From positions 2,287,713 to 2,351,712 of the forward strand of contig CAJFCJ010000004.1 in assembly GCA_904063045.1 (NCBI GenBank): 64,000 bases of DNA, given 5' to 3'. The stretch's first letter is position 1, and every line of letters begins with the position of its first letter. A program made the position numbers and the translations under genes. Origin of the DNA: Dimorphilus gyrociliatus. Taxonomy: Eukaryota > Animalia > Annelida. Positions 11,701 to 37,300 of this stretch are shown one piece after another. The notes beneath the pieces are model-generated. The model did no database searches, was not told where the DNA came from, and saw nothing but the letters and a program-made list of their open reading frames with translations.

Positions 11701-14700
11701 GAACGCTTCGTTACAAATAACTTCAAAACCTTTAGCTACGTGACTTCCGCCGTACCTATATGGTATTCTTTGAGATATATTTTCCAATTCAGAACTCTTG
11801 TTAAATTCATTCAAGTAGTATTCTATTCTTGCATCATTAGAGTAGGTTGCAATTCCTATTCTTGTATGATTTTGGCTAACTTGCATATCTGATGTAATTT
11901 TTACGATGAATTTTAGTATTTTATAAAAATTATCTCTTCCAACTGAGCCCGAAGAATCAACAAGAAAAATTATATCTGCTCTCGAGTTACAGCCCTTTTC
12001 ACAATTTTTTCCTTGAAAACCATCTTTGCATATGCACGTATACTTGTTAATTCCATCCAGGCACTTTATAGCATTTTTACAGGGAGAGGACAAACATTGA
12101 TCCTCTTTTTCGCAGAGGGCACTCAATAACGAATGTGTTACGTGCTCTAAATGTACCAGGGATTCTTTTTCCGTGTTTATTTGATTGTAAATATCGGGAT
12201 GAAAGGGTTCAAAAGGTTTCCAATCGTCATGTTCGACTTTTCCAACTCCAAAAGTGAAGAATTTTACAATAGTTCCATCTGAAATAGAAATATTAATACA
12301 TTTTTAAAGATATTATCAGATATGGATAAATAGATATTTGAAAACATGAGTAAGAGGGAATGAGAGTAAGAAACAAAGATACTAAGAGAAGAAATAATAA
12401 ATGCATGTTTACTTTTAGTTTCCATATTAAATTTATCCATTCTTGTTCCACCAGTTAATAGAAAAGCAAAATTTGCAATATCTTTTCTGTTGACAGTCTC
12501 CTTCGAAAATTCATTTAATGCTAATCTCATGGCTCCAGCTGTGTATGGATAACCTCCCCTAAAAGTTACGTTAACTCTGAGCAGTTCCTCTAATTGTCTC
12601 TGTGAATTATTCGATAATGACAATAACAATTTGGCTTCTGAATCGTAACTTATTAAACCAATACGACTCTGTCCTCTATTAAATTGTTTAATTAAATCAA
12701 TTGCAAATTGTTTAGCTTTTTTTAATAAATATCTTCCGATAAAAGCTGATTGGTCGATGATAAACATAATATCCGATTTGCTGTTGCATTCTAAAAGTCA
12801 TAAATAATAACTATATCCTGTATAAGTTGCAATATAAATAGTTAAATAAAAAAAAAATTTCTTACGTTGTTCACAGTCTACTCCAGAAAAAGCTGGAGGA
12901 CACTTGCAAGTATATGAATAAATACCATCTTTACATTCTCCGTTATTTAAACAAGGATTTGGGTTGCATTGATCAACGTCTAAAGAGGAATATAAAGTGA
13001 TGTATATTATAAATATGACAAATCAAACAGATGTTTTTTTCTTCTCTTCCAACGAAACTCATCTTACCTTCCAGCAAATAATGAAGTAGATCTCTGCGTA
13101 TCTTGAATAAATCTTCAAAAGTTTCTGCAGTAAAGATTCCCTTTAATTTCTCCGTTGCCAGAGGAATAAATATATCCTTCTTCTTTACTGGAACACCTAT
13201 TGGTATAACTGATATATCTTCATTCGAACAATGCTTCGCCTATAATTAATAAAGAAGATATTAGTTTAGAAACAGAAAAGGATGTTTTAAACTAAGATGT
13301 TTCAAAAATGTATTCTTCCTCCCTCTCTTACTTCTAATGCGGTATTCTTTGTTCCAATATTTGATAATCCGTCCGAGATAATAACCAAAATATTTCTAGC
13401 GTCTTTTCTATCACCGTAGCTTTCATGAAACATCTCCTCTCTAGCTATTCTCAAAGCTTCCGATGTAAATGTATAACCAAAACTATCAAAATACAACTAA
13501 ACTTTTCTAGTCTCTTGAAAATATGAAAATTGCATTACCTGTATCCAAATTGCTCAATGCCTGTTAGTATATCTGATGTTGTATTAAACTTATTTAAATG
13601 AAATTCAATTATGACATCACTTCCATATTTAAGTAAGCCAATTCTATATGAATAATAATGAGATATTACAAGGCATTCTTAGAATATTATTAGACAAAAG
13701 AGGGACAATTCCTAGAAACTAATTGTACCTAAAGTTGCAAGAAACTATGTCAATCTCTTCTATAACACTTTTGACGAATCGTTTTAATTTGAAAAAACTC
13801 TCTTCTCCAATAGAACCAGAAGAATCTAATATGAACACTAAATCTGCTGCAGAATTGCAGGCTGTTTTCGAAAGAGAAAAGAGAACATTAAGAAAGTAGA
13901 ATAAGTATTATTTACAATCAATAAATCTATTTTTAAAGTATCTTTACTATATTGACACATCTTTCCAGTAAATTTCTTTTTGCATATACACTGGAAATAG
14001 TTTAACGAATCGACGCAAGTTCCTCCGTTTAAACATTTCTGATATTTACAAGCGTTCTTATCTATTAAATTAGAAAAGATCGTAAAGGGGAGAACCACCA
14101 CAAATGAAGGTTAATGAAATAAAGTTTTATTACCTGCTTGAAAATATTTCACCAATGGTATTACTAACTTCTGCAATTGGTTAAACCCTTTAATAATTTT
14201 TAAATTTGAAGAATGAGGCTTTGATGCCAGATCAGTTAAACCGTGAATAAGTTGATTTTCGTTTTGACCGTTTATAATTCCAATGCATATTACGTTAATT
14301 AAAGAGTCGTGTACATTTCTAGCTTCTTCCCATATTGATTTGGAGTTTGAAATACCATCAGTTATAATAACAGCTATATTTTGTACTTTCGGTCTATCTC
14401 CAACAGAAGTTTGAAATAAATCATTTCTTAAAACCTTTAAAGCGTCTAAAATATTTGATTTAAATCCAAACTGATATTGTACTTTTCTGATTCTTTTAAC
14501 AATATCAATCTTTCTTTCGCTATCGTTCAAACGTAGCCAAACTTTAACTTTTTTACCAAACGTTAGTAAAGATATTCTATAAGTTTTATCATCGACATCC
14601 AATCGGTTTATAATTTTGATAACAAATCTTTTAATTTTACCGAAATTCCATTTACCAATACTACCGCTAGAATCTATTAGAAATACAATATCTCCACCAG

Positions 14701-16416
14701 AGAATGGTTTGTGTACATTATTATCCGGTAGAGTTGGTTGAACGGGTTGAAAATTGCATATGTTTGCAAGTATCTTTTGCCTCTCAGCGTGTAGATGTGA
14801 ATATTTAGAAACGTATAATAGATTATTACGAATAGGTGTTGAAACAGTTTTGTTTAGTATTGCATTTTTAATTGATTCAACGCCAACACCAATAGCCATT
14901 ATCTTTATTCCGGACTTTTTTGTATTTTCGGCTTGTTTATAAATCTCTTGAACACTTGTTGTCCATCTACCATCAGTTATTAATAAAAGAATATTTTCAG
15001 CGTTTCTTCTGTCACCTTTAGAATAGCTATTTTTAGGAGAAGTAAAATGCTTTTTATATATTTGAAATAGGATGATTTATCTTTTACCGACTGGAAAACG
15101 TTGTTTGTAACATTTTCCAATGCTGCTGTAACATTTGATATTCCGTATATATATTGTATGTACTTTAAAGCTTGTAAAGCTGCATTGTTCGAATTAAATT
15201 TATTCAAATAGAAATGAATAGTAGATTTTGTACTAAAGGTCGTTAAAGAGACTCTTGCTTGGCCTATTGCGTAAGATAGGTAAGTAGAAATGATTAGCTA
15301 TTATGTATTGTATATGATCTTAGAACCGTAATCTATGTCCAATTCTTGAATAATGCTGCTGGTAAACTGTAAAATAAGATGAAAATGTTTAACTCCAATA
15401 CTAGATGAAGAATCAACAAGAATGGCCAAATCAATTATTTTCGTACAATCTAGACAAGGAAAATAAAAAACAATTCATTTTATGGGCTTTTTACTGATCT
15501 CTACAAAAGTTTACCCTTTTTGTAAACGGATGATTGATTATGCAAAGATAACAGGTGGGCTTGCAATAAAATACCTAAAAAATACACAAACTAAAGATTA
15601 GACTTTGGCAAATACAACAAACTAAGTACATCGTAAAAATGCAGGAGAGATAAAAAAAATAGAAGAAGATAGCGTTATCTTCTTTGGTATTATTATTATT
15701 ATTATATATAGTTATATATAAATATAGAATAAACATAAAGAAAACAGGATTCTATTTGTAAACTATTTATACTTACTATTACAAAATTGTTCAAAAATTT
15801 TTCTGCTATCTCTTATCAATATTTCGTAGTTTTCCACCAAAACCAAATATCTCCTATGTGGAGGAGAAGATACGTAACGTAACTCTTCAATTGCTCTATC
15901 ATTTCCCCGTAGTTTTATCCCTAGAATGAAAATTTGAAGACCGTTTTTTCGGGCTCTCTCAGCCTTAAAAACTGTTCTTTCGGCGTTGATATCCGATGAA
16001 CTATCAGTGATAATTAAAGCAACATTCGGTGCGTAGTCGCGATCTCCGTGTGCTTCTTTAAAAACTTGGGTATTTAAGAGATGAAGTGCGCTAGCCAAAT
16101 TATTCGCCCCACCTCGAAACTTTCTCTTTCTCAGGAATGAATTTATTTGCGATATTGATGTTAAAGGCGATTTCAATGAAAAGTGAATATTTGCCTTAGT
16201 AGCATATGTAACAAAAGCTAACTTTGTCTGATTTCTTAAATTAATAGTTTTAAAGAAAGAATGAAAGAAATATTGAAGATTTAAGATATCTCTTTCCTTA
16301 ACGCTGCTCGATGTATCTAGAACTACAGCGATATCCAAATCACAATCGCAATCTAAAGGAATTTTAAGAAAATCTAAGGTAATCTAGGTTAAGATAATAC
16401 AGCTTTTGTTTATATA

Positions 16417-19357: not shown

Positions 19358-22300
19358 ATGGGAATTAAACTGTTCTTTTGGATGTCTCCCATCATTCTTT
19401 TCTCCTACCTTGGTAAAGTTGACTCAAGAAGAACTTTAAAACTTGGATTTATCACTCCAAATAGCGGTCCTCTAAGTTATGGAACTACTGCAGCAGCAAC
19501 AACTATGGCAATTGAGAAAGCTAAGAAAGACGGCTACCTTCCAGATACAGATGTCAGGTAAAAATAAGTAATTAATGAAATTTCCTTTAAAATTGGAAAA
19601 AAAAGAGAAAGAAAATACAAAAGAAACCGATAAAGTTAAAAAAGACTTTAGTGATAGAACGTTAATACAAAGTTTCTCCCGTAGCTTTCAATTACCAGAG
19701 TCCAACTCCAAGTGACATTACATAATAGCATCTGTACGACAGTATTTTGATAAGTAATATTTATATACATCTTCTATTGTCAAATACAAACAAAAAACAA
19801 GAGACACTAAAGTTTTTTATTTCCTTTAAAAGTCTACTTAAAAAAAGTCGCTTCGTCAGATTTTTAATACTAATATTAGTAGTATATTATTTATAGAGCA
19901 TCTATTAGAGCGATTTTGTTGCTGTATTCGCATTTTTCATAGAATTTCAAAATTTTCATAAACAGCGCTAATTTCGTAATCCAATTGACTTAATTAAATT
20001 TCTTATACTTATACAATTACTTTTTTAAAAGGCTAATATGGCGTAATGGAGCTTGTAGTGGTAAACAAGCTCTTGGTGTAACTGTTACTTTATGGAGGGA
20101 GGAGGATGTGGATGGATATATTGGTTTGCCATGTTCAATTGGTAAATTTTTGAATCATAAACATAAATTTAAAAAATGAATAATTCTTATCAATTATTAT
20201 GATAACAATAGATAAAGAAATAGTTATCTAATATTACTAGTAGTTTTAATTAATAAGTTACCATTTCACAGTATATACACAATACATGTTTATATTAAGT
20301 GTTACAATAAGATTGAATGAAAGAGGATATGACTATTAACGAAAATCAAGGAGGAAAGAGTGAATGGAAGAAAAGTATTAGCTATATTTGTCTATAATCA
20401 TACTTAAAATGTAATAGTCTATATAATTTTAATATTACTTTGCTAATGAAGGATAGAACATGAGTAAATGTTGAAAAAAATTAGTATCAAAGATTTGTTT
20501 TAGCATATCTGATATTTTCTTTAAGGTTATCTCGTCTCATTTTAAATATATGCTTAATTATAAGACAATCCAAAATACATTGCTGTTTGATATTATATAC
20601 CTAAAGTAAAATAAATGTAGGCAAAGGAAAAATTACATAGGCATATATTTAATTACAAGCAACCAGTTTTTTCCCATTAATTTTTAGTATACTTTGAAAT
20701 ACTTCTTCATTTTTTGTTTTTAAAATGAACGTATTCAATATCCTTCAGCCGCTATAAATGCAGGAAAGGTTATCTCATTTTGGAATTTACCTCATTTTAC
20801 CCATGAATCACCAGATCCAGAATTGGCTCATAAACAGACATATACAACACTGATACGAATGCTTAGCCCTTTTAACAAACTGGCTTTAGCCCTTTTGAAA
20901 TTTATAGAAAATATGGGATGGAGCAGAGTAGCCATGGTAACAACTAGTCCTGCTCTTACGCATTGTGATTTCGCAAGCAGATCTATTGAAAAACTATTTC
21001 TCGACTCGAATATAACTTTAATTGATTGGTTAAAAAGGTCAAGTATGCCCGATAGATTTACCATCTTTAAGTGGTTAGACAGGATAAAAGAGAGAGCGAG
21101 AAGTAAGTTAATAATTAACATTGATAATAAAAAATATATTGAACTAAGATTAATGATTATTCTTCTTCCCAAGTTATTATTATATGTACGGATGAGGTTC
21201 ATTTACGAGATTTTATGCTACAAGCTGAAGAAAAGAAGATGACTGACGGTGATTACGTCTTCATTGAACCTACGCTTCTGCCATATGAAAACTACAAGAA
21301 CCGCTGGCAACAAAAAGATGGTAATGATGAAAGAGCATTCACAGCTTTTCAGACACTTCTTCAAGTTTGTTTAATACAATTTCAAAGAGTAGGAAGCGAT
21401 TAAAACTTTTGATTACGCTCTATTATTAGATGGCTCTTGGTTTTGTTAATACCGAGGAAGCGGAAAAATTTAGAGAAGAACTACCAAAGAAAATGGCCGA
21501 ACCACCTTGGAATTATACTAAGACTTTGGAGAATAAAGAAAAGGTCAGATCAAAGACTTAAGTCTAAGATATAAAAAAGATTATAATTAGTACTTTTACA
21601 ACAAGTACAACTTATATTCTATGATCTAATTCTTTTAAAATAACTTTGAAACTATTCCAATAAAGTCATCAAAGAAACTTAATTAATTTATTAGTGTTTT
21701 CTTGGTATGCTAATGAATGAATGGAATTTCAATGAATATTTTCTTCAAGCCAAATCCCTTTGTTTCAGGGTTCTTTATTTTCATTGTATCTTCATGATAC
21801 ACTCTACCTTTACTGCATTGCTGTCGATAGAGTTCTTAAACTCGGTGGTGATCCTAGAAATGGAACATTTATTTTTGATCAGGCAAAAAACATTACGTTC
21901 AAAGGTTAATACAGAAAAAATATAATCTAATGAATAGGACTTTTTATGTTTTTTCATAAAATCTTAGGAATTTCTGGCGATGTTGTGTTGGACGAAATTG
22001 GGGATAGAATAGGAGACTATTGGATATGGCAATTGAGGAAAAAGCGCGATGAATATGATCTTTGGGCAAAAATTTCTGTCTCCAAAAAGGATAAATCAAA
22101 AGTAAAGTATACTATTAAAATATTAATGCAATAAAAGATCCTTTGCATTTGAAGGTTATTGAATACGAAGCGATTAGGCATTGGGGAGCTAAATTTGGCT
22201 ATGAAATTCCATTGGATACTCCTAAATGTGGATTTTTTAATGAACTTTGTCCAAAAGAAGGATCAGGCCTAAATATCGCAACTGTAATTGCGATCGTTGC

Positions 22301-26640: not shown

Positions 26641-26813
26641 GAGTTAACAAAAATCACTTTAGCAACTAGGTGCGCCACTGTCAAAATATTTTTACTTAAC
26701 TAATAGTTCTCTTAAATGAATGAGCCTGACCGGTATTTCTATTCCAGACAAATACAGTTTTTATACAAACCGTCATTTAACTCAATACAAAGAACTTACA
26801 CTAATCAAGAATT

Positions 26814-28617
26814 ATGAAAATTTTAGTATTTTTCGCTTTGTTGGTTGCATGCCTCAAAGCTAAAAAATTTCTTTTATTAACGAATCAGATGCCATCCCAT
26901 ACGATGATGGTATGGAGTATAGGATCAGAATTAGCCGAAGAAGGACATGACGTAAGTTTTTAGTATTATTACTATTATTCCGTGAACGCTCTATCTATCT
27001 CCAAAAGTCTTTGTAAATGATTAAAGTTTCGTCGTTACATAAATTTAAAGTTTTATTAAAACTTTATTAATATCTCTGTTATTTAACTTATTGTATATTT
27101 ATTTATACAGGTTGTTGCAATAACCAAAAAAGACTTTGAAGCGAACAAATTAAAGCATTTCGAAAAGAATATTAAGGTTAAGAAAAAGAAACATGACAAT
27201 ATATCTATTTTAATTAAAGAGTATCTACCGATTTATTTAGACTTGGCAATTTGAACCAATTAAAGGTCCTTTCGCTAATGAACGTGAAGCTGAAAAAAAG
27301 TTTTTTGACTTTCTTTTTCAAGAAGTTTTAGCTGGAAAAAGACCACCAATAAACCCAAATATTGTTCAGGGTTTATACAATGAAACTATAGCTATTGTTG
27401 AAAATAAAGAATTAATGAACAAGATAAGAGATTATAAATTTGATGGTGCAATTTTGGATGGATTTGTCCTCGCTAGATTTTTTGCTGTTATTCCTTATCA
27501 TTTTGGAATTCCTATTTTTACTGTTACAGACATGTTAATGGATCCAGCAATACAAATAGCTTCGCTACCATCTCACATTCCTCATTTACTTACTCCCTTT
27601 ACAGAAAGAATGTCCTTTACTGAAAGATTATTAAATTTTGTCTCAGTTTCTGTAATATGTAATCCAACTACTCGAAAAATGGTAATTCCTCAGATGCCTA
27701 CAGATTATCTATTCAAGAAATTTGTTAGAGATGATAAGATTAAACACTGGGATGATTTAATAGCAAAATCGGAATTATTTATTATAACTCGAAATCATAT
27801 GCTTGAATATCCTGCACCGACTTGGCCAAATACTATTACAACACATAGTTTAACTGTCAGACCCTTTAAACCTTTAACTGAAAAATTTGAAAAGATGGTA
27901 TTAAAACATCCAGATAAAAAACTTGTTTTTGTTAGTTTTGGATCACATGGAGATTTGATACCTTCTTCATTTTCAATGAAATTGCTCGAAGCATTTGGTT
28001 CCTTCAATGATGTTCATTTCATTTGGTCATATCGCTTACTAGAAAGTGATGCTGAAAAAGTTCCATCCAATGTAGATATCGTTCCGTGGGCACCTCAAAA
28101 CGATTTACTCGGTCACGATAGAGTATCAGCATTTATCACTCATGGTGGTCAAAATGGACAATCCGAGAGTGTTTATCACGGAAAACCAATGCTATGCATA
28201 CCATTATTCGCCGAACAACCTCATAATGCTGTTCGAATTGCTTATCGAAAATATGGTAAATATCTATTCCCCCATGAACTTACAACAGAGAAATTACAAT
28301 TATTGTTAAGAGAAGTTCTAAATAACGATGTATACGCTAAAAATGTGAGAAGAGCCAGCGAAATTATAAAATCCCAGCTTGTTCCGGATATAAAAAGAGT
28401 TACACACGAAATATTAACTATTACTGAACACGGTAGTTCCCATCTTAAGAGTTATGGACAGTCTATGCCATTTTATCAATACTTTTCATTAGATATTATA
28501 TCTTTTATATTCTTTGTTATTTTAATTGTGTTATCTTTCATTTCATTTGTTCTTTGTTACGCTTTTAGAAAACTAAAACGCTATTGTTTTTCAACCAATA
28601 AAGAAAAGGTTCAATGA
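26814..28617 (+). CDS. UDP-glycosyltransferase (UGT-A), 526 aa, ER membrane type
   Basis: Exons 26814-26951, 27111-27176, 27241-28617. Signal peptide, catalytic His (NQMPSH), UGT signature WAPQNDLLGH...FITHGG...ESVYHGKPMLCIPLFAEQ, C-terminal TM helix and KEKVQ ER-retrieval tail. Confidence 0.93.
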
Positions 28618-29628
28618 TTGAAAATTAAATTAAAAATACAAAATTATGGAATCATTTAATAGAAATGAGATGGATATTGATTGTAAAATATTATCTTCAA
28701 CAATTATATAATAGAAAGCATCTGAATTATTTTTGACTATTGCTACTTTAATTTTGCAGTTGTAACCTTAATAATTTATTGCTATCAATTCGTATGACGA
28801 AAAAAGTCATAATCAGCAGCAATAAATAGATAGTTGAACACAAACTATATTCACTAAAAGAATGTTTATTGTTCAAATTTTTTTGAACATTTCTTAACAG
28901 AGATGAAAGCAAATATCAGTTATCTTTTCGATTTATTTCTCAATCCATAAATGTTTACCTTAAATAAAAGAAAGAAAGAACAAATTGTTGATTAAAAATA
29001 AATCAATAGATATGGACTAAAAAGAGAACTATTCAATAAGTTTGCATATATTATTCCCAACTGAACGATAGGCTTTTTTAATATTCTATTGCGGTTTGAA
29101 TATGACAAGTAGTTTTATTACTGTAAGAAATTCTTTTCAATTTTAGTAATAATGATTTAATTCTTTAAATCTTACATAAAATCAGCTAAAGAGTGTTGGG
29201 TTTCACTTAATAATATCATTTTTTGGAATAATGAAGCCCTATTTATACAGTATACAACTGTAGACTTGTGAACTATTAAACAAGTATGAGTCATTTTTTT
29301 CAGAACAAATCGAACACAAACAATGTCTCTTTGATTGAGTTTCTAACACTTGTCGTTTTTTTTACAAATACGCCATCTACCCGATTTGGTCTAAGTGTAA
29401 GTAAATTATAGCGAAAATAATCATAAAGTAGAGGGCGACATTGAAAATTTTGAAAACTCAAAAAATTTTCATTCTCTCTGTAGTAGAAAATATTTCAAAC
29501 ATTGAATACTAAGACTACCACCACAATTTAGTCTAACTTATGTGTATAAACCACTGTGAGCGATATACACACATTTCTAACTGTCCGGCGAAGGTTAAAT
29601 AGATTTCGGTTTAAACCAAAAAGAAAAT

Positions 29629-31356
29629 ATGAAAATTGCAATACTTTTTGTAATGATAATATCATGCTTCGAAGCTAAAAGATTTCTTTTGCTTACGAAT
29701 CAAATGCCATCTCACGCTATGATGGTTTGGAGTATTGGATCTGTTTTGGGTGTAGAAGGACATGATGTAACTTTTTATTATTCTTATTATTAATAGACGT
29801 AGTATCCTTATTCTATTATTCTAATTCTATAGGTCTAACACCATCATTTATATTTATTCAGGTTGTTGCAATAACAAAAACAAATTTTGAAAGAAATAAG
29901 TTAAAGCATTTTGAAAAGAATATTAAGGTAAATAAAGAATTGTCTTAATTCAACATCTTACGATTATTTTTACAATTAGGTATGGGAATATGAACCAATT
30001 GAAAGCTATTTCGATAAAACAGGCGGAATGAAGGAACTTGTTATTAAGGAAGCTTTAGAAAGAACCATAGCTGGAAAACAACCAAAATTGAGACCCGATA
30101 TGCTTGAATACATATACAATGAAACTGTAGCTATGGTAGATAACATAGAATTAATGAACAAAATCAGAGATTATAAATTTGATGGAGCAATTTTAGATGG
30201 ATTCTTTATAGCTAGATTTTTTGCTATCATTCCTCATCACTTTCGAATTCCTATTTTTACTGTTACAGACTCTTTAACAGATCCTGTCATTCAGCCAGTC
30301 TCACTACCTTCTTACACTCCTAGTTTATTTTTGCCCTGTAGTGAACAAATGTCTTTTACTGAGAGACTATTGAACTTCGCTTTAACTGTTCTACTACGTA
30401 CTCAAATTATGCGAAATATGATGTTTCCTCAGATCCCTACCGACAACCTTTTCAAAAAATATGTTGCAGATGACAAGATTAAACACTGGGATGATTTAGT
30501 GAAAGAATCAGAACTATTTATTGTATCTCGAAATCATATGCTTGAATACCCTGCACCGATTTGGCCTAATACTCTTCTGGCTCACAGTTTAACTGTCAGA
30601 TCCCCAAAACCTTTAACTGAAAAATTTGAAAAAATGGTATTAAAACATCCAGATAAAAAACTTGTTTTTGTTAGTTTTGGGTCACATGGAGATTTGATAC
30701 CTTCTTCATTTTCAATGAAATTGCTCGAAGTATTTGGTTCCTTCAATGATGTTCATTTCATTTGGTCATATCGCTTACTAGAAAGTGATGCTGAAAAAGT
30801 TCCATCCAATGTAGATATCGTTCCGTGGGCACCTCAAAACGATTTACTCGGTCATGATAGAGTATCAGCATTTATCACTCATGGTGGTCAAAATGGACAA
30901 TCCGAGAGTGTTTATCACGGAAAACCAATGCTATGCATACCATTATTCGCCGAACAACCTCATAATGCTGTTCGAATTGCTTATCGAAAATATGGTAAAT
31001 ATCTATTCCCCCATGAACTTACAACAGAGAAATTACAATTATTGTTAAGAGAAGTTCTAAATAATGATGTATACGCTAAAAATGTGAGAAGAGCCAGCGA
31101 AATTATAAAATCCCAGCTTGTTCCGGATATAAAAAGAGTTACACACGAAATATTAACTATTACTGAACACGGTAGTTCCCATCTTAAGAGTTATGGACAG
31201 TCTATGCAATTTTATCAATACTTTTCGTTAGATATTATATCTTTTATATTCTTTGTTATTTTAATTGTGTTATCTTTCATTTCATTTGTTCTTTGTTACG
31301 CTTTTAGAAAACTGAAACGCTATTGTTTTTCAACCAATAAGGAAAAGGTTCAATAG
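29629..31356 (+). CDS. UDP-glycosyltransferase (UGT-B), 526 aa
   Basis: Exons 29629-29766, 29862-29927, 29980-31356: same sizes (138/66/1377) and phases as UGT-A. Full signature, TM and KEKVQ tail. Confidence 0.93.
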
Positions 31357-31792
31357 TTTCATCTCCAGATAATTAATTGCTATGCAAATGTGTTATATTA
31401 GAAATATTGTTGAAAATATAATAGCTTTATTAAAACAGAAAGTGTTTATTTATTATATATTTATTAAAATTGTGAACTTTGAAGGCTTTTATTCAAATAT
31501 AGTTTTGTAAAATAAACTTCATTTAGGTCCTTAATAGGTTGATTTAAGCCTCTAACTATATATATTATATTTAAATTTACTCCATAGTCAAATACAGATA
31601 TAGTATAAAATAACTGTTCAAGTCACAAGAAATTTTTGCTAAATACCAATAGCATTTAACTTCTGTTGTTACAAAACCTTTATTTTAAAGTAAGAAACTA
31701 AAAGGCTTTTGTCTGTAGCTGTTACAGATAACAAACAGATATATTAACGTTTCTTTCTAGAAAGCCTAATATTTTTACAAATATTATTAACA

Positions 31793-31975
31793 TGACTCAT
31801 TCTTTCAGGACATATGGGTGAGACATAGTTCACTCTTGAACTTTGTTTCTAACGGACAAAGGTTTTATACTAAAACAACATCTCTTGGTTATCAGAAGAA
31901 TTAAAGGAAAGAATCAAAAAAATATAGAATTTAAAACTGGGTGCAGCATTGTTCCAAAAATGTGATTTATTTTCA
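31793..31975 (+). repeat. ~180-bp diverged direct repeat, copy 1 (copy 2 at 32797-32978, upstream of UGT-C)
   Basis: Both copies start TGACTCATTCTTTCAGGACATAT and share GACGGACAAAG/AACGGACAAAG, CATCTCTTGGT and AACTGGGTGCAGCA at a constant 1004-nt offset. Confidence 0.85.
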
Positions 31976-31984
31976 AAACATCAC

Positions 31985-32504
31985 TCTATTAATGTTTCAT
32001 CTTACATAGACATCGTTTCATGGGTGCAACAAAAGGATTTACGCGGAAATGATAGAATGTCAGTATTTATCACTCGTGGAGAAAGCAATAGATAATTCGA
32101 GAGTGTTTATCATGGAAAACCAATGTTATGCATACTCTTATTAGCCCAATATCTTTATAAAGCCATTCGAATTGCCTATCGGAAGCATGTTAAATATCTT
32201 TTCCTCATGGAACTTCCAAAGGAGAAATTACACAGTTTGTTAAGTTCTAAATAATGATATATTTATTAGAAAATGTGAGAAGATAAATGAAGCATGAAAT
32301 AGTAACTATTACTGAACATGGTAGTTCCCATCTTAAGAGTTATGGATAGTATATGCAATTTTATAAATATTCTTCAATAGTTATATTAATATTTATAATT
32401 TGGGTATCAATATCCGCTGTAACCATCTTGTTGTTAGCATTGCATTTTGCTTATAACCAAAATTAAATACTGTTTTATTTCAGACAAAGAAGAAGGTTGA
32501 ATGA
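31985..32504 (+). pseudogene. UGT pseudogene: 3'-terminal fragment of a UGT-C-like duplicate
   Basis: Reads SINVSSYIDIVSWVQQKDLRGNDRMSVFITRGESNR*FESVYHGKPMLC, with stops and frameshifts, and ends AAGAAGGTTGAATGA like UGT-C. The 3' flank (to ~32760) resembles the UGT-C 3' flank. Confidence 0.85.
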
Positions 32505-33130
32505 TTGATTTATTTTGTTTTTAGTATCTTAAACATTGTAATGTTAATCTTTTTATTAAATGTTGTTGTACAACTTGTTTCACATAACAGACATTAATAA
32601 ACTACATGTCTTTTGTATACATTGAGAAAGTATAATCTTTATGTTTATATTATCTTATCTTTATAAAAGTGTTACTGTATTAAGTTTATTATAATCACTA
32701 TTGAAAAACTGCTTTTCACTGTGAAATATATAAATTCATATCTTTATATTATCTCTATACTTTTTAAATTTAAAATTTCTGGAAACTCTAAATAATTGAC
32801 TCATTCTTTCAGGACATATCGGTGAGACTCAGGTTACCCTCGTATTTATTCTCTGACGGACAAAGTTTTGCACACTAACACGCCATCTCTTGGTCATCTG
32901 AAGAATTTACAGAAATAGTTAACAAAATTACATTTTGAAACTGGGTGCAGCACTGTCGCAAAATTGTGACCTATCTTCGAAGTGAACATTCCCTTCATTG
33001 AAACAAGACTTGACAAGGTGGCGCTAAAGTCAAATTTCAAATATATAAATATATGTATATATAAAGTGGAAAATAAATTCAAATTAGTCTGAAAGGAAAC
33101 TAATAAAGAGCTTCTGCATTTAAAAGAATT

Positions 33131-34844
33131 ATGAAAGTTGTAATATATTTCGTCTTAATGATAGCTTGCCTCGAAGCTAAAAAGTTTTTATTGCTAACAA
33201 ATCAAATACCCTCGCATACTATGCTGGTTTGGAGTATTGGATCAAGCTTAGCTGAAGAAGGACATGATGTTAGTTTTATTTTTCCTATTATTGCGATACT
33301 TAGCAATCTAATCATAGAGATATTATATTTTAATCTTTTTTATAAAGGTTATTGCCTTAACTAAAACAAACTTTGAAACGAAAAAGTTAAAACATTTTGA
33401 AAAGAACATCAAGGTAAATAATCATCTATATTTTTAATATAATCGCTAATAATACCAATATATTTAGACTTGGCAATATCAACCAATTGAAAGCTATTTT
33501 GACCAATTTCGCGGAATGGAAAAACAGCTTTTGCAGTCGGGAATTAAACGAGCGTTGAAAGGACAACCGCCAGAGATGAGGGCAGACATGATTGAATATT
33601 TGTACAATGAGACTATAGCTATTGTTGAAAACAAAGAATTAATGAACAAGATAAGAGATTATAAATTTGATGGTGCAATTTTGGATGGATTTCTCCTCGC
33701 TAGATTTTTCGTAATCATTCCTTATCATTTTGGAATTCCTATTTTCACTGTTACTGAATCACAAATAGATCCCGTGTTTCAACCAATTTCGCTACCTTCC
33801 TACATTCCTCATTTGTTGTCTCCGTTTACAGAAATAATGTCTTTTACTGAAAGATTATCGAACTTTTTTACATATATTGTACTATTCAATCCCACCCTTC
33901 GAAATTTGATAATTCCTCAGATGCCTACAGATTATCTGTTCAAGAAATTTGTTAGAGACGATAAGATTAAACATTGGGATGATTTAATAGCAAAGTCGGA
34001 ATTGTTTATTATAACTCGAAATCACATGCTTGAATATGCTGCACCGACTTGGCCAAATGCTGTTGTTGTGCACAGTATAACTGTAAGACCTTCTAAGCCT
34101 TTGTCAGAAAATTTCGAAAAACTAGTATCCAAACATCCAGATAAGAAAATTGTATATGTTAGTTTTGGATCTCATGGTGATTTATTACCCGTTTCGATTT
34201 CATTACAATTACTCGAGGCCTTTAGGTCTATGGATGACATTCATTTTATTTGGTCATATCGTTTTCCGGAAAATGAAAGTATTAATTTTCCATCTAATGT
34301 AGATATTGTTCCGTGGGCACCACAAAACGATTTACTCGGTCACGATAGAGTATCAGTATTTATCACTCATGGAGGAAACAATGGACAATCCGAGAGTGTC
34401 TATCACGGAAAACCAATGCTATGTATTCCCTTATTTGCAGAACAACCTCATAATGCTGTTCGAATTGCCTATCGAAAATATGGCAAATATCTTTTCCTCC
34501 ATCATTTTTCAAAAGAGAAATTACAATTTTTGCTAAGAGAAGTTCTAAATAACAATGTATATGCTAAAAATGTGAGAAGAGCTAGCGAAATTATAAAATC
34601 CCAGCTTGTTCCGGATATTAAGAGAATTACACATGAAATAGTAACTGTTACAAAATATGGTAGTTCCCATCTTAAGAGTTATGGACAGTCTATGCCATTT
34701 TATCAATATTTTTCATTAGATATGTTAATATTTTTAGTGTGGGCCTCAATATCTGCTCTAATAGTCTTTTCATTAGTTTCCTATTACGCATATAAGAAAT
34801 TGAAGAGTTTTTTTATTTCATGTATGAAGAAGAAGGTTGAATAA
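33131..34844 (+). CDS. UDP-glycosyltransferase (UGT-C), 526 aa
   Basis: Exons 33131-33268, 33348-33413, 33468-34844 (138/66/1377). Full UGT signature, TM helix, KKKVE di-lysine tail. Confidence 0.93.
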
Positions 34845-35959
34845 CTATAAATTTATTGTTTATTTGTATTTTAAACATTTGCAATGTTAATCCTTTCACT
34901 AAACATCTCGTATCGTATAGAGTAGTCTTATGGAAGTCACATTAATAAGCTACATTTCTCAAAGCAATAAAAAGCTTCATATTTTGTATATAGATTTTTA
35001 TGCAGTATATTTGTAAAATAAAATATTTACTCTTATAAATCCGTCTTAATATGTTTACATTATCTTATCTTTTATATTTAAAAGGCGTCACTCTTTTAAG
35101 TTTATTATAATCACTTATTATAATATATATTATAAAAGATTGTCTTCCACTCTAAAATATATACAGTATATATATCTTTTTATTATCTTTTTTTCTTTCA
35201 GTCTCTCTTTCTCGTTCTCTCCTTGTCTTTATTTGTTTGTCTCTGTGTCTTCTTGTCTGTCTCCCTCCGTTCAGCTATCTATCTTTTATCTATTTAGTCT
35301 GGTTATTTAATTTATTTCGTAAAGAATAATAGTAGACAGACGTAATTCTTAAAAAAATTAGAATTTAAAGATAAAATAGGAACCCTTAAATATACCGTGA
35401 ACTTTGTAATATAAGTATAATGATATAAACTTGGTAGGGAATTTATCGCTTGACATTGGAAGGTTCTACTTCAATCTTCAATTTATGCTTCAGCCGTCAG
35501 CTAAAGTGAAATCTTGCCTTTTCTGTTTCTTTGATTTGGGTTTTTAACATAGTGAAATGTTTTTTTCATTCTCTCTACGGTACTCATCCATACAAGAGCT
35601 ACTTTAAATATATGTATACAGTATATATTCTAGTTATCACTAGCAGAACAAAGGTGCATACTTGTTTATCAAAACTATACGTTTGTATTTATATTATTAC
35701 ATGAACCTCCATTGGTAAACTGGTAAAAGCTACCAATAGAGAGCATATTACAACCTAAACATTACTGATATATCTCAAATGTATATTAAATTTGACAGGT
35801 TTTAACGCTGTTTTGTAGAGGTTAAGAATCAATTACAATTAATTAATTAGGCTAATAATTTATATTAATACCAAAAATAATATAAACTAACATTTTTATC
35901 AATAATAGTATTTATTAATTAAACTAAATGAAGTTCTTTGATCAATATTCCTTCGTTTC

Positions 35960-37300
35960 AAGTTGAAGGTTTTTAAGAAGAACATTCAGATCGTTGAACA
36001 AAAAAATAATGATGTATAAATTATGGAAAATAACAGTTTTCAATTTCTTTCTCCCCTTCACTTTTAAGGCGTGGCATTCGGATTCCCTGAGAAAAGATGG
36101 AGGCTATCAGCTGAACGAATATTTTGACTGGAAATGAAAAGCTAGTTGACAATGCTCTAAAAGAAAAAAAAACCATGACAATACAGACGATTTTGCAGAG
36201 TATCCTTATAACGATACTGCTGCCATTGTAAATGATAAAGTACTCATGAATAAGATAAAGAATTAGAATTTCGACTTGGCTATTGTTGATAGTTCTTTAT
36301 ACGCATCATTTCAACTTTCCATATGTCACTGTTTCAGGAACCTCTCTCGATCTCATGATAAAACCTGTTGTAAATGTCAGTTATTGTTATGAGTATATAA
36401 AAGAGGCTTGCAGTTCCATACCTGCTGAGAAGAAAGGTATTAGAGAAATATAGATTGAGCGAAGAGCGAAGACATAAAAGATTATGACGATATTACATTT
36501 AAAGCCAGTCCCTTTATTGTTGCTGGAAACTCTTTGCTTGAGTATCCTTTACAACTTTGACCTAATGTTTTGACTATTCATTTAACAACGCCTGAGCCGG
36601 TAAAACCTTTACCAGTGAATTAGAATATGCTGTTGACTAGATATTTGAAGAAGATAGCTTACGTTAGCTGTGCTTAAATAGGGGAATGATTACCGATCTC
36701 TATTTCTAGGAATTTCTTAGTTCCTCTGATTTAAATACTTTAAGCATTCTTTTTTTCGTCTTTCTGATTATCCAAGAGTAACAACTTTGCAATTCGGAAG
36801 ATGTCGAAATTCCATCTTGGACGCCTTAAAATGACCTATTGGGAGATGATAGGATAAATATGTTTATTACACACGGTGGACATCGAAGTCAAACAGAAGC
36901 CTTCATCACGGAAAACCAATGCTATGCATACCTATTTTGGCTGAATAATCTCACAACAGTGTTCGAATAAGTTATCATAAATATGGCAATTTTTTTTTAC
37001 CGATAATGAAACCAAACGCTGATAGTTTAAAAGAGTGCGATTAACGATGTCTTAGAAAATCGCGAATATAAAGAAATATCAGAAAAATCGATTAAAATAT
37101 TAAAATCTAAAAGAATCTCCAATATACGAAAGACTGGAGGACTGTGAAGATCATTTATGCAGCTATTGACAATGTATACCTTTCTACCGAATCGCTTTAG
37201 TTGATGAGATGTTTTTGGCTTTCATTAACAACATTTGTTTTTACAATATATTTCATTTTGAATTGAACAGAGAGTTTTGGATTTTAGCTTATTAATATTA
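35960..37300 (+). pseudogene. Older, more divergent UGT pseudogene
   Basis: Collinear UGT fragments KLKVFKKNIQ, LMNKIKN*NFDLAIVD, LLEYPLQL*PN, SWTP*NDLLGDDRINMFITHGG...HHGKPMLCIPILAE*SHN and PFYRIALVD, with multiple TAA/TAG/TGA stops. Boundaries approximate. Confidence 0.8.

Follow-up and report, generated by a model that had tools for sequence, protein, structure and literature searches.

In a 64,000-nucleotide stretch of the genome of the annelid Dimorphilus gyrociliatus (assembly GCA_904063045.1, contig CAJFCJ010000004.1, forward-strand positions 2,287,713 to 2,351,712; hereafter the window, in whose coordinates all positions are given), two neighboring genes for detoxification enzymes, the UDP-glycosyltransferases (UGTs), which we call A and B, have clearly diverged 5′ halves and near-identical 3′ halves. 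We consider it likely, with a probability of roughly 0.85, that this pattern records one recent interlocus gene conversion of ~750 bp between old tandem duplicates. This is a known process in a new instance, and it involves no new mechanism or gene architecture. D. gyrociliatus is a miniature annelid with a genome of 73.8 Mb, and the paper describing that genome does not mention gene conversion (PMC7854359).

The window is AT-rich (30% G+C) and carries five UGT-related units between 26.8 and 37 kb, all on the plus strand. Three of these are genes of three exons apiece: A (26814–28617; exons 26814–26951, 27111–27176 and 27241–28617), B (29629–31356; exons 29629–29766, 29862–29927 and 29980–31356) and C (33131–34844; exons 33131–33268, 33348–33413 and 33468–34844). 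Each encodes 526 residues, and the three products align without a gap throughout. Database searches and fold prediction were carried out on the exon-3 products (458 of the 526 residues), and the joined three-exon proteins served for codon statistics only. The Pfam family PF00201 (UDPGT) matches the products of A, B and C with E = 1.6e-64, 4.8e-63 and 1.6e-61, respectively, spanning both domains of the enzyme (profile positions ~77–492 of 499), and the exon-3 sequences align to the crystallized C-domains of UGT2B7, 2B15 and 2B17 with E = 1e-21 to 1e-23. The UGT signature (WAPQNDLLGH...THGGQNGQSES...PLFAEQ) is visible in the alignment of all three, and the gene A product has it together with the catalytic His/Asp context. 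Read by eye, the proteins begin with a hydrophobic N-terminus, a putative signal peptide, and carry near the C-terminus a hydrophobic stretch of ~25 residues, a putative transmembrane anchor, at which the AlphaFold2 model places a long helix. They end in tails of the KxKxx (dilysine) type, KEKVQ in A and B and KKKVE in C. Judged by the profile match, the signature and the two-domain fold, the three are animal-type UDP-glycosyltransferases (GT1, GT-B fold).

The shared segment occupies codons 278–526 and lies at 27868–28614 in gene A and 30607–31353 in gene B. Both copies are 747 nt long, align without gaps and differ at exactly nine sites (98.8% identity), located in copy A at 27894, 27942, 27992, 28116, 28326, 28469, 28488, 28575 and 28602; seven of the differences are synonymous and two are non-synonymous. 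The 60 nt directly upstream hold 14 differences between A and B. At the other end, the last identical base is the T of the stop codon (TGA in A, TAG in B), beyond which the 3′ flanks are unalignable. Along the gene, identity between A and B runs at 0.3–0.5 in flanks and introns, which is the chance level for AT-rich DNA, at 0.5–0.9 in the N-half, and at 0.97–1.00 in the C-half. The 5′ junction sits within exon 3 in both genes. A preliminary description of this stretch had given about nine mostly synonymous differences, diverged N-halves and introns, a start of identity inside a single exon and an end of similarity at the stop codon, with unrelated 3′ flanks, and our counts bear out each of these.

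Silent sites change as abruptly as the overall identity. By the Nei-Gojobori method, synonymous divergence (dS) between A and B is 0.654 over codons 1–277 and 0.046 over codons 278–526, a 14-fold gap. By maximum chi-square, the breakpoint lies exactly between codons 277 and 278 (213 versus 9 differences, chi-square 194, Fisher P = 5e-53), and a Sawyer-type fragment score of 97 compares with a null maximum of 17 (permutation p < 1/2000); both tests are our own implementations of maximum chi-square and GENECONV type methods. The tract encodes the C-terminal Rossmann domain with a helix leading back to the N-domain, then the putative transmembrane anchor and the tail. Within it, seven silent changes over 158 sites stand against two replacement changes over 589 sites (Fisher P = 4e-4), which indicates that both copies have been under purifying selection since the tract formed. 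Because the nine differences would have accrued under such selection, A and B both appear to remain working genes. At the protein level, A and B are 62% identical in the N-half and 99% identical in the C-half. Among ~120 animal UGTs sampled, the C-half was the more conserved half in every case, and, vertebrate shared-exon isoforms aside, A and B are the most extreme pair in this respect. As a separate observation, UGT paralogs on one chromosome of Octopus bimaculoides (P0070, P0071 and P0073) have N-halves with 75% identity and C-halves with 93%.

The two halves of the genes also tell different histories. A contig of a related species from Logan (L001) is syntenic with the window, with flanking genes at 74–83% nucleotide identity. 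It contains a diverged UGT, an N-half fragment and only one intact UGT, whose identity to A, B and C is ~67%. We regard A, B and C as lineage-specific duplicates because just one intact ortholog is present at the corresponding locus of the relative. Using that ortholog (L001:7820–9178) as the outgroup, we built maximum-likelihood trees from exon 3 split into an N-part and a C-part, separate trees having been proposed in the preliminary description. The N-part tree pairs A with C (91%) to the exclusion of B, whereas the C-part tree pairs A with B (99%) to the exclusion of C. Informative sites divide 20:26:8 for the N-part and 39:1:1 for the C-part. Some of the 5′ flank is likewise common to A and C and missing from B. 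Silent divergence in the tract amounts to ~7% of that of the A–B split, and gene C, which lies outside the recent tract, stands at a dS of 0.56 from the shared C-half.

Two further observations concern the N-half and the syntenic block. The N-half is itself a mosaic, in which some A–C windows reach 94–98% identity, and one A–C fragment at 27461–27485 (nucleotides 648–672 of the A coding sequence) contains seven consecutive polymorphic sites without a difference (permutation p = 0.02); these short matches hint at further small exchanges between A and C. In the comparison of L001:174–19028 with window positions 20003–42844, the UGT block of the relative's contig is inverted with respect to the two conserved flanking genes.

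We also examined where the 5′ end falls in the protein. The AlphaFold2 model of the gene A exon-3 product (mean predicted local distance difference test score 90, predicted template modeling score 0.86) consists of alternating strand/helix domains. Numbered within exon 3, residues 198–200 form the last N-domain strand, 201–213 a loop and 214–221 the first C-domain helix. In this model the first residue of the tract, K278 (exon-3 residue 210), falls in the loop that connects the two Rossmann domains. The crystallized C-terminal domains of human UGT2B7, 2B15 and 2B17 begin at the aligned ...KPAKPLPKEMEEF..., the same point as the tract start. At its 3′ end the tract simply runs out of alignable homology. 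The 5′ end alone could have come to lie elsewhere, and homology continues upstream of it at 80–90% identity. The chance of a 5′ end landing in this 13-residue loop is ~3%.

The preliminary description had placed this switch point at the position homologous to the boundary between variable and constant exons of the vertebrate UGT1A locus. Taking UGT1A1 to be 533 residues long, and using in addition a 245-residue constant region, residue W354 and three gaps in the UGT2B alignments, we map the UGT1A exon 1/2 junction roughly to E282|K283, five codons 3′ of the tract start, on a numbering that is partly our assumption. The 245 residues are those encoded by the UGT1A constant exons (PMC1851988), and W354 is the Trp of the WLPQ motif in UGT1A (PMC1885805). 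A text search for the UGT1A junction peptide returned only irrelevant matches. The claim is thus roughly supported, being accurate to five residues. In a separate comparison, the three isoforms P0093, P0100 and P0106 of the cichlid Neolamprologus match one another at 100% from ~residue 241 onward, in gene A protein numbering. This point is a UGT2A-type shared-exon boundary. Vertebrates use two variable/constant boundaries, and this speaks against a convergent design at A and B.

The position of the 5′ end lends itself to a different explanation, in which conversion is recurrent and bounded by selection: the donor-binding half is kept common, and the need for distinct acceptor specificities bars tracts from the N-domain. 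The arrest of the tract in the inter-domain loop, despite 80–90% homology upstream, is what such a process would leave behind. The ratio of non-synonymous to synonymous divergence is also higher in the N-half (0.38) than in the C-half compared with gene C (0.28). A further point in its favor is a probable older tract that involves gene C. Over codons 341–480, the core of the C-domain (28057–28476 in gene A; gene C counterpart 34284–34703), dS of A and B from C is 0.29–0.33, compared with 1.1–1.3 in the two stretches of the C-half on either side (Fisher P = 6e-6). Measured to the outgroup, dS is uniform across these parts but saturated, so it is a weak control. An earlier conversion involving gene C is probable here, at a strength we would call suggestive only.

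The same data also tell against conversion bounded by selection. The older tract ends at codons ~341 and ~480, away from the domain boundary. The C-half of gene C is diverged (dS 0.56), so that the supposedly constant half is common to only two of the three genes. The N-half carries the A–C mosaic signal described above, and a single boundary, reached by chance in ~3% of cases, is all there is to judge by. We therefore hold this explanation to be unlikely. If it were true, the locus would correspond in function, at the level of DNA, to the UGT1A variable/constant locus. A more general form of the idea, that in D. gyrociliatus frequent short-tract conversion between neighboring paralogs together with selection may keep "housekeeping" modules common (candidates being the UGT donor domain, TIR and GAIN) while specificity modules diverge, strikes us as equally doubtful; under it, the A/B pair would be a DNA-level equivalent of that vertebrate design and not a one-off event.

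Polishing errors classically arise at nearly identical repeats such as these two of 747 nt, which lie 2.7 kb apart, and one 3′ half could in principle have been collapsed, duplicated or polished with the reads of the other gene during assembly. We placed public contigs from four runs (X1, DNA; X2, X3 and X4, RNA) and two studies on positions 26700–31500. RNA contigs skip exactly four introns (26952–27110, 27177–27240, 29767–29861 and 29928–29979), both of gene A being confirmed in X2, X3 and X4, which confirms the gene models of A and B and the transcription of both genes; the contigs were checked at the introns of A and B, and those of gene C are predicted from its model. In X4, a spliced contig of 1803 nt (record 19) runs over 29487–31436 without a mismatch, from the gene B 5′ untranslated region (UTR) to 80 nt past the stop codon, and holds all nine B-specific letters. 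An X2 contig (record 11, 30634–31436) also has B-specific letters and continues from the tract into the gene B 3′ UTR.

DNA contigs from X1 complete this picture. Record 3 crosses the 5′ junction of gene A, and record 8 (2119 nt) leads from the last 70 nt of A through the intergenic DNA and the N-half of B to beyond the 5′ junction of B. A second study, from 2017, adds RNA contigs that cross both 5′ junctions (X3 records 13 and 14). In total, all four junctions with unique sequence, two 5′ and two 3′, are bridged by contigs with zero mismatches, and DNA contigs tile the gene A tract without a mismatch. The two sets of letters at the nine sites thus both occur in public data, that of A in DNA contigs and that of B in RNA contigs. 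Word depth in X1 is ~640 in the shared segments versus ~220–325 in the unique parts, roughly double, although contig depth is a rough guide and not a copy number. Both tract copies and their junctions are real, and both genes are expressed. We consider an assembly artefact very improbable.

One unequal crossover would be another route to a chimeric gene: such crossovers do occur in tandem arrays whose genes share an orientation, and they yield N/C chimeras. Such an event should have brought the 3′ flank of the donor along; identity instead ends at the stop codon, and a sensitive blastn search of the 3′ flanks found no displaced homology between those of A and B. Gene conversion is preferred over a single crossover because two exchange points are needed, and the crossover seems to us scarcely credible. 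Least of all do we credit a recent duplication of the whole gene after which the N-domain alone changed fast in amino-acid sequence: it is true that evolution is faster in UGT N-domains than in C-domains, and the C-half was always the more similar in the sampled animal UGT pairs, but the silent sites of the N-half are diverged too (dS 0.65, and not as low as in the C-half, the result that the preliminary description had named as pointing to duplication), introns and flanks are unalignable, and the N-part groups A with C and not with B.

Two other routes were considered and rejected. A shared exon reached by alternative splicing does not fit a junction that lies inside an exon, genes that each have their own copy and their own 3′ UTR, and RNA joints none of which crosses between genes. 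The 14-fold dS contrast, the conflicting trees and the junction-bridging contigs uphold the preliminary view that conversion, not splicing, is at work. Conversion mediated by cDNA was suggested by the absence of introns from the 3′ 1.4 kb of all three genes, and is unlikely given that the 3′ UTR is unshared.

Under the interlocus gene conversion that we favor, A, B and C would be old tandem duplicates of one UGT gene. A recent non-reciprocal recombination would have copied ~750 bp between A and B, from the inter-domain loop to the last codons. The 3′ end of the copied stretch falls where alignable homology stops, at the stop codon, and the 5′ end lies inside sequence that is still homologous. 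Both copies would then have gathered nine differences under purifying selection and would have stayed functional, and both are transcribed. We infer the recombination mechanism, the single-event status and the direction of transfer. As for direction, we lean weakly toward gene A as the donor, because A goes with C in the N-half tree and in the 5′ flank, and because the distance of the shared C-half from C is about the same as that of the N-half of A.

Some points weigh against this account. A single event is indistinguishable from several successive ones. The tract stops no more than 12 nt short of where homology ends, having crossed a putative transmembrane and tail region only ~60% identical to that of C, and gene conversion leaves this resolution at the distal end unexplained. 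The doubling of depth is subject to the limit already given, and the nine variants are phased for B only, by one RNA contig, those of A resting on overlapping short DNA contigs.

The vertebrate UGT1A locus, in which many variable first exons are spliced to shared exons 2–5 (PMC1885805, PMC1851988), resembles the A/B pair in its products. In both cases a different acceptor-binding N-domain is joined to an identical or almost identical donor-binding C-half of ~245–249 residues, and the switch point lies in or beside the inter-domain linker. The genes themselves differ. A and B share no exon, lack an intron at the junction and involve no alternative splicing. The C-half is present in two physical copies that differ at nine sites and run into separate 3′ UTRs; two genes of the three take part, and the switch lies five codons upstream of the mapped UGT1A junction. 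Where a UGT1A-type locus has one set of constant exons for all members, gene C has its own diverged C-half. Where such a locus has alternative first exons, the RNA joints seen here are the four short introns of A and B, and no RNA contig joint links the N-half of A to the C-half of B. The resemblance to UGT1A lies in the protein products and not in mechanism or locus architecture. The proposal in the preliminary description that conversion is producing a variable-N/constant-C repertoire, a convergent route to the UGT1A design, is not supported: gene C has escaped homogenization, a single event fits the data, and the older tract ends elsewhere.

The remaining UGT-related units of the window are fragments. 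A pseudogene fragment, psi1 (31970–32460, plus strand; identified by tblastn, translation and the repeat families D1, D5, D9 and D11), comprises only a C-half with stops and frameshifts, and a promoter-like upstream region is joined directly to codon ~334. Across the psi1 region (31767–32776), the fused stretch is 74–78% like the sequence upstream of gene C (32771–32981), and the 3′ flank of psi1 (32508–32776) matches that of gene C (34851–35188). Taken together, psi1 looks like an internally deleted gene. A second fragment, psi2 (36189–36999, plus strand), is a degraded UGT recognized from tblastn pieces of 39–57% identity; it matches L001 11356–12253, the second, diverged UGT of the relative.

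As for existing annotation, the gene C product from Met31 onward is identical to P0001 (DgyrCDS3140, D. gyrociliatus). This public model (496 residues) begins at Met31 of gene C and is thus without the putative signal peptide. With exon-3 queries, the gene C product alone turned up among the protein-search matches, and those of A and B were absent from them. Genes A and B may lack annotation or may have been merged into a longer model. Elsewhere in the window, several long open reading frames on the minus strand at 10533–14899 carry von Willebrand A and EGF domains and look like at least one gene for a multi-domain extracellular protein.

Interlocus conversion between tandem paralogs, limited to one protein module, has precedents: the TIR domain of mammalian TLR1 and TLR6, CYP21A2 and CYP21A1P (PMC3843699), and the variable exons of protocadherins (cited in PMC1885805). 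Li & Wu (2007) reported little conversion among the vertebrate Ugt1 variable exons. The A/B pair shares with these cases a sharp near-identical tract within old paralogs, homogenized silent sites, conflicting trees of the parts and the continued function of both genes. It differs in that it lies in an annelid UGT cluster and in that its tract corresponds exactly to the donor-binding half plus the putative membrane anchor. We found no description of conversion limited to the UGT C-domain in the literature searched, the coverage of which was incomplete.

For the study of this family, whole-protein trees of these UGTs will mislead, because A and B are not recent duplicates. The pair constitutes a natural domain swap, with different acceptor domains and an essentially identical donor domain, and lends itself to studies of how substrate and sugar specificity divide between the halves. 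The tract shows no designed repertoire; it is a clean evolutionary data point for gene conversion in a compact genome.

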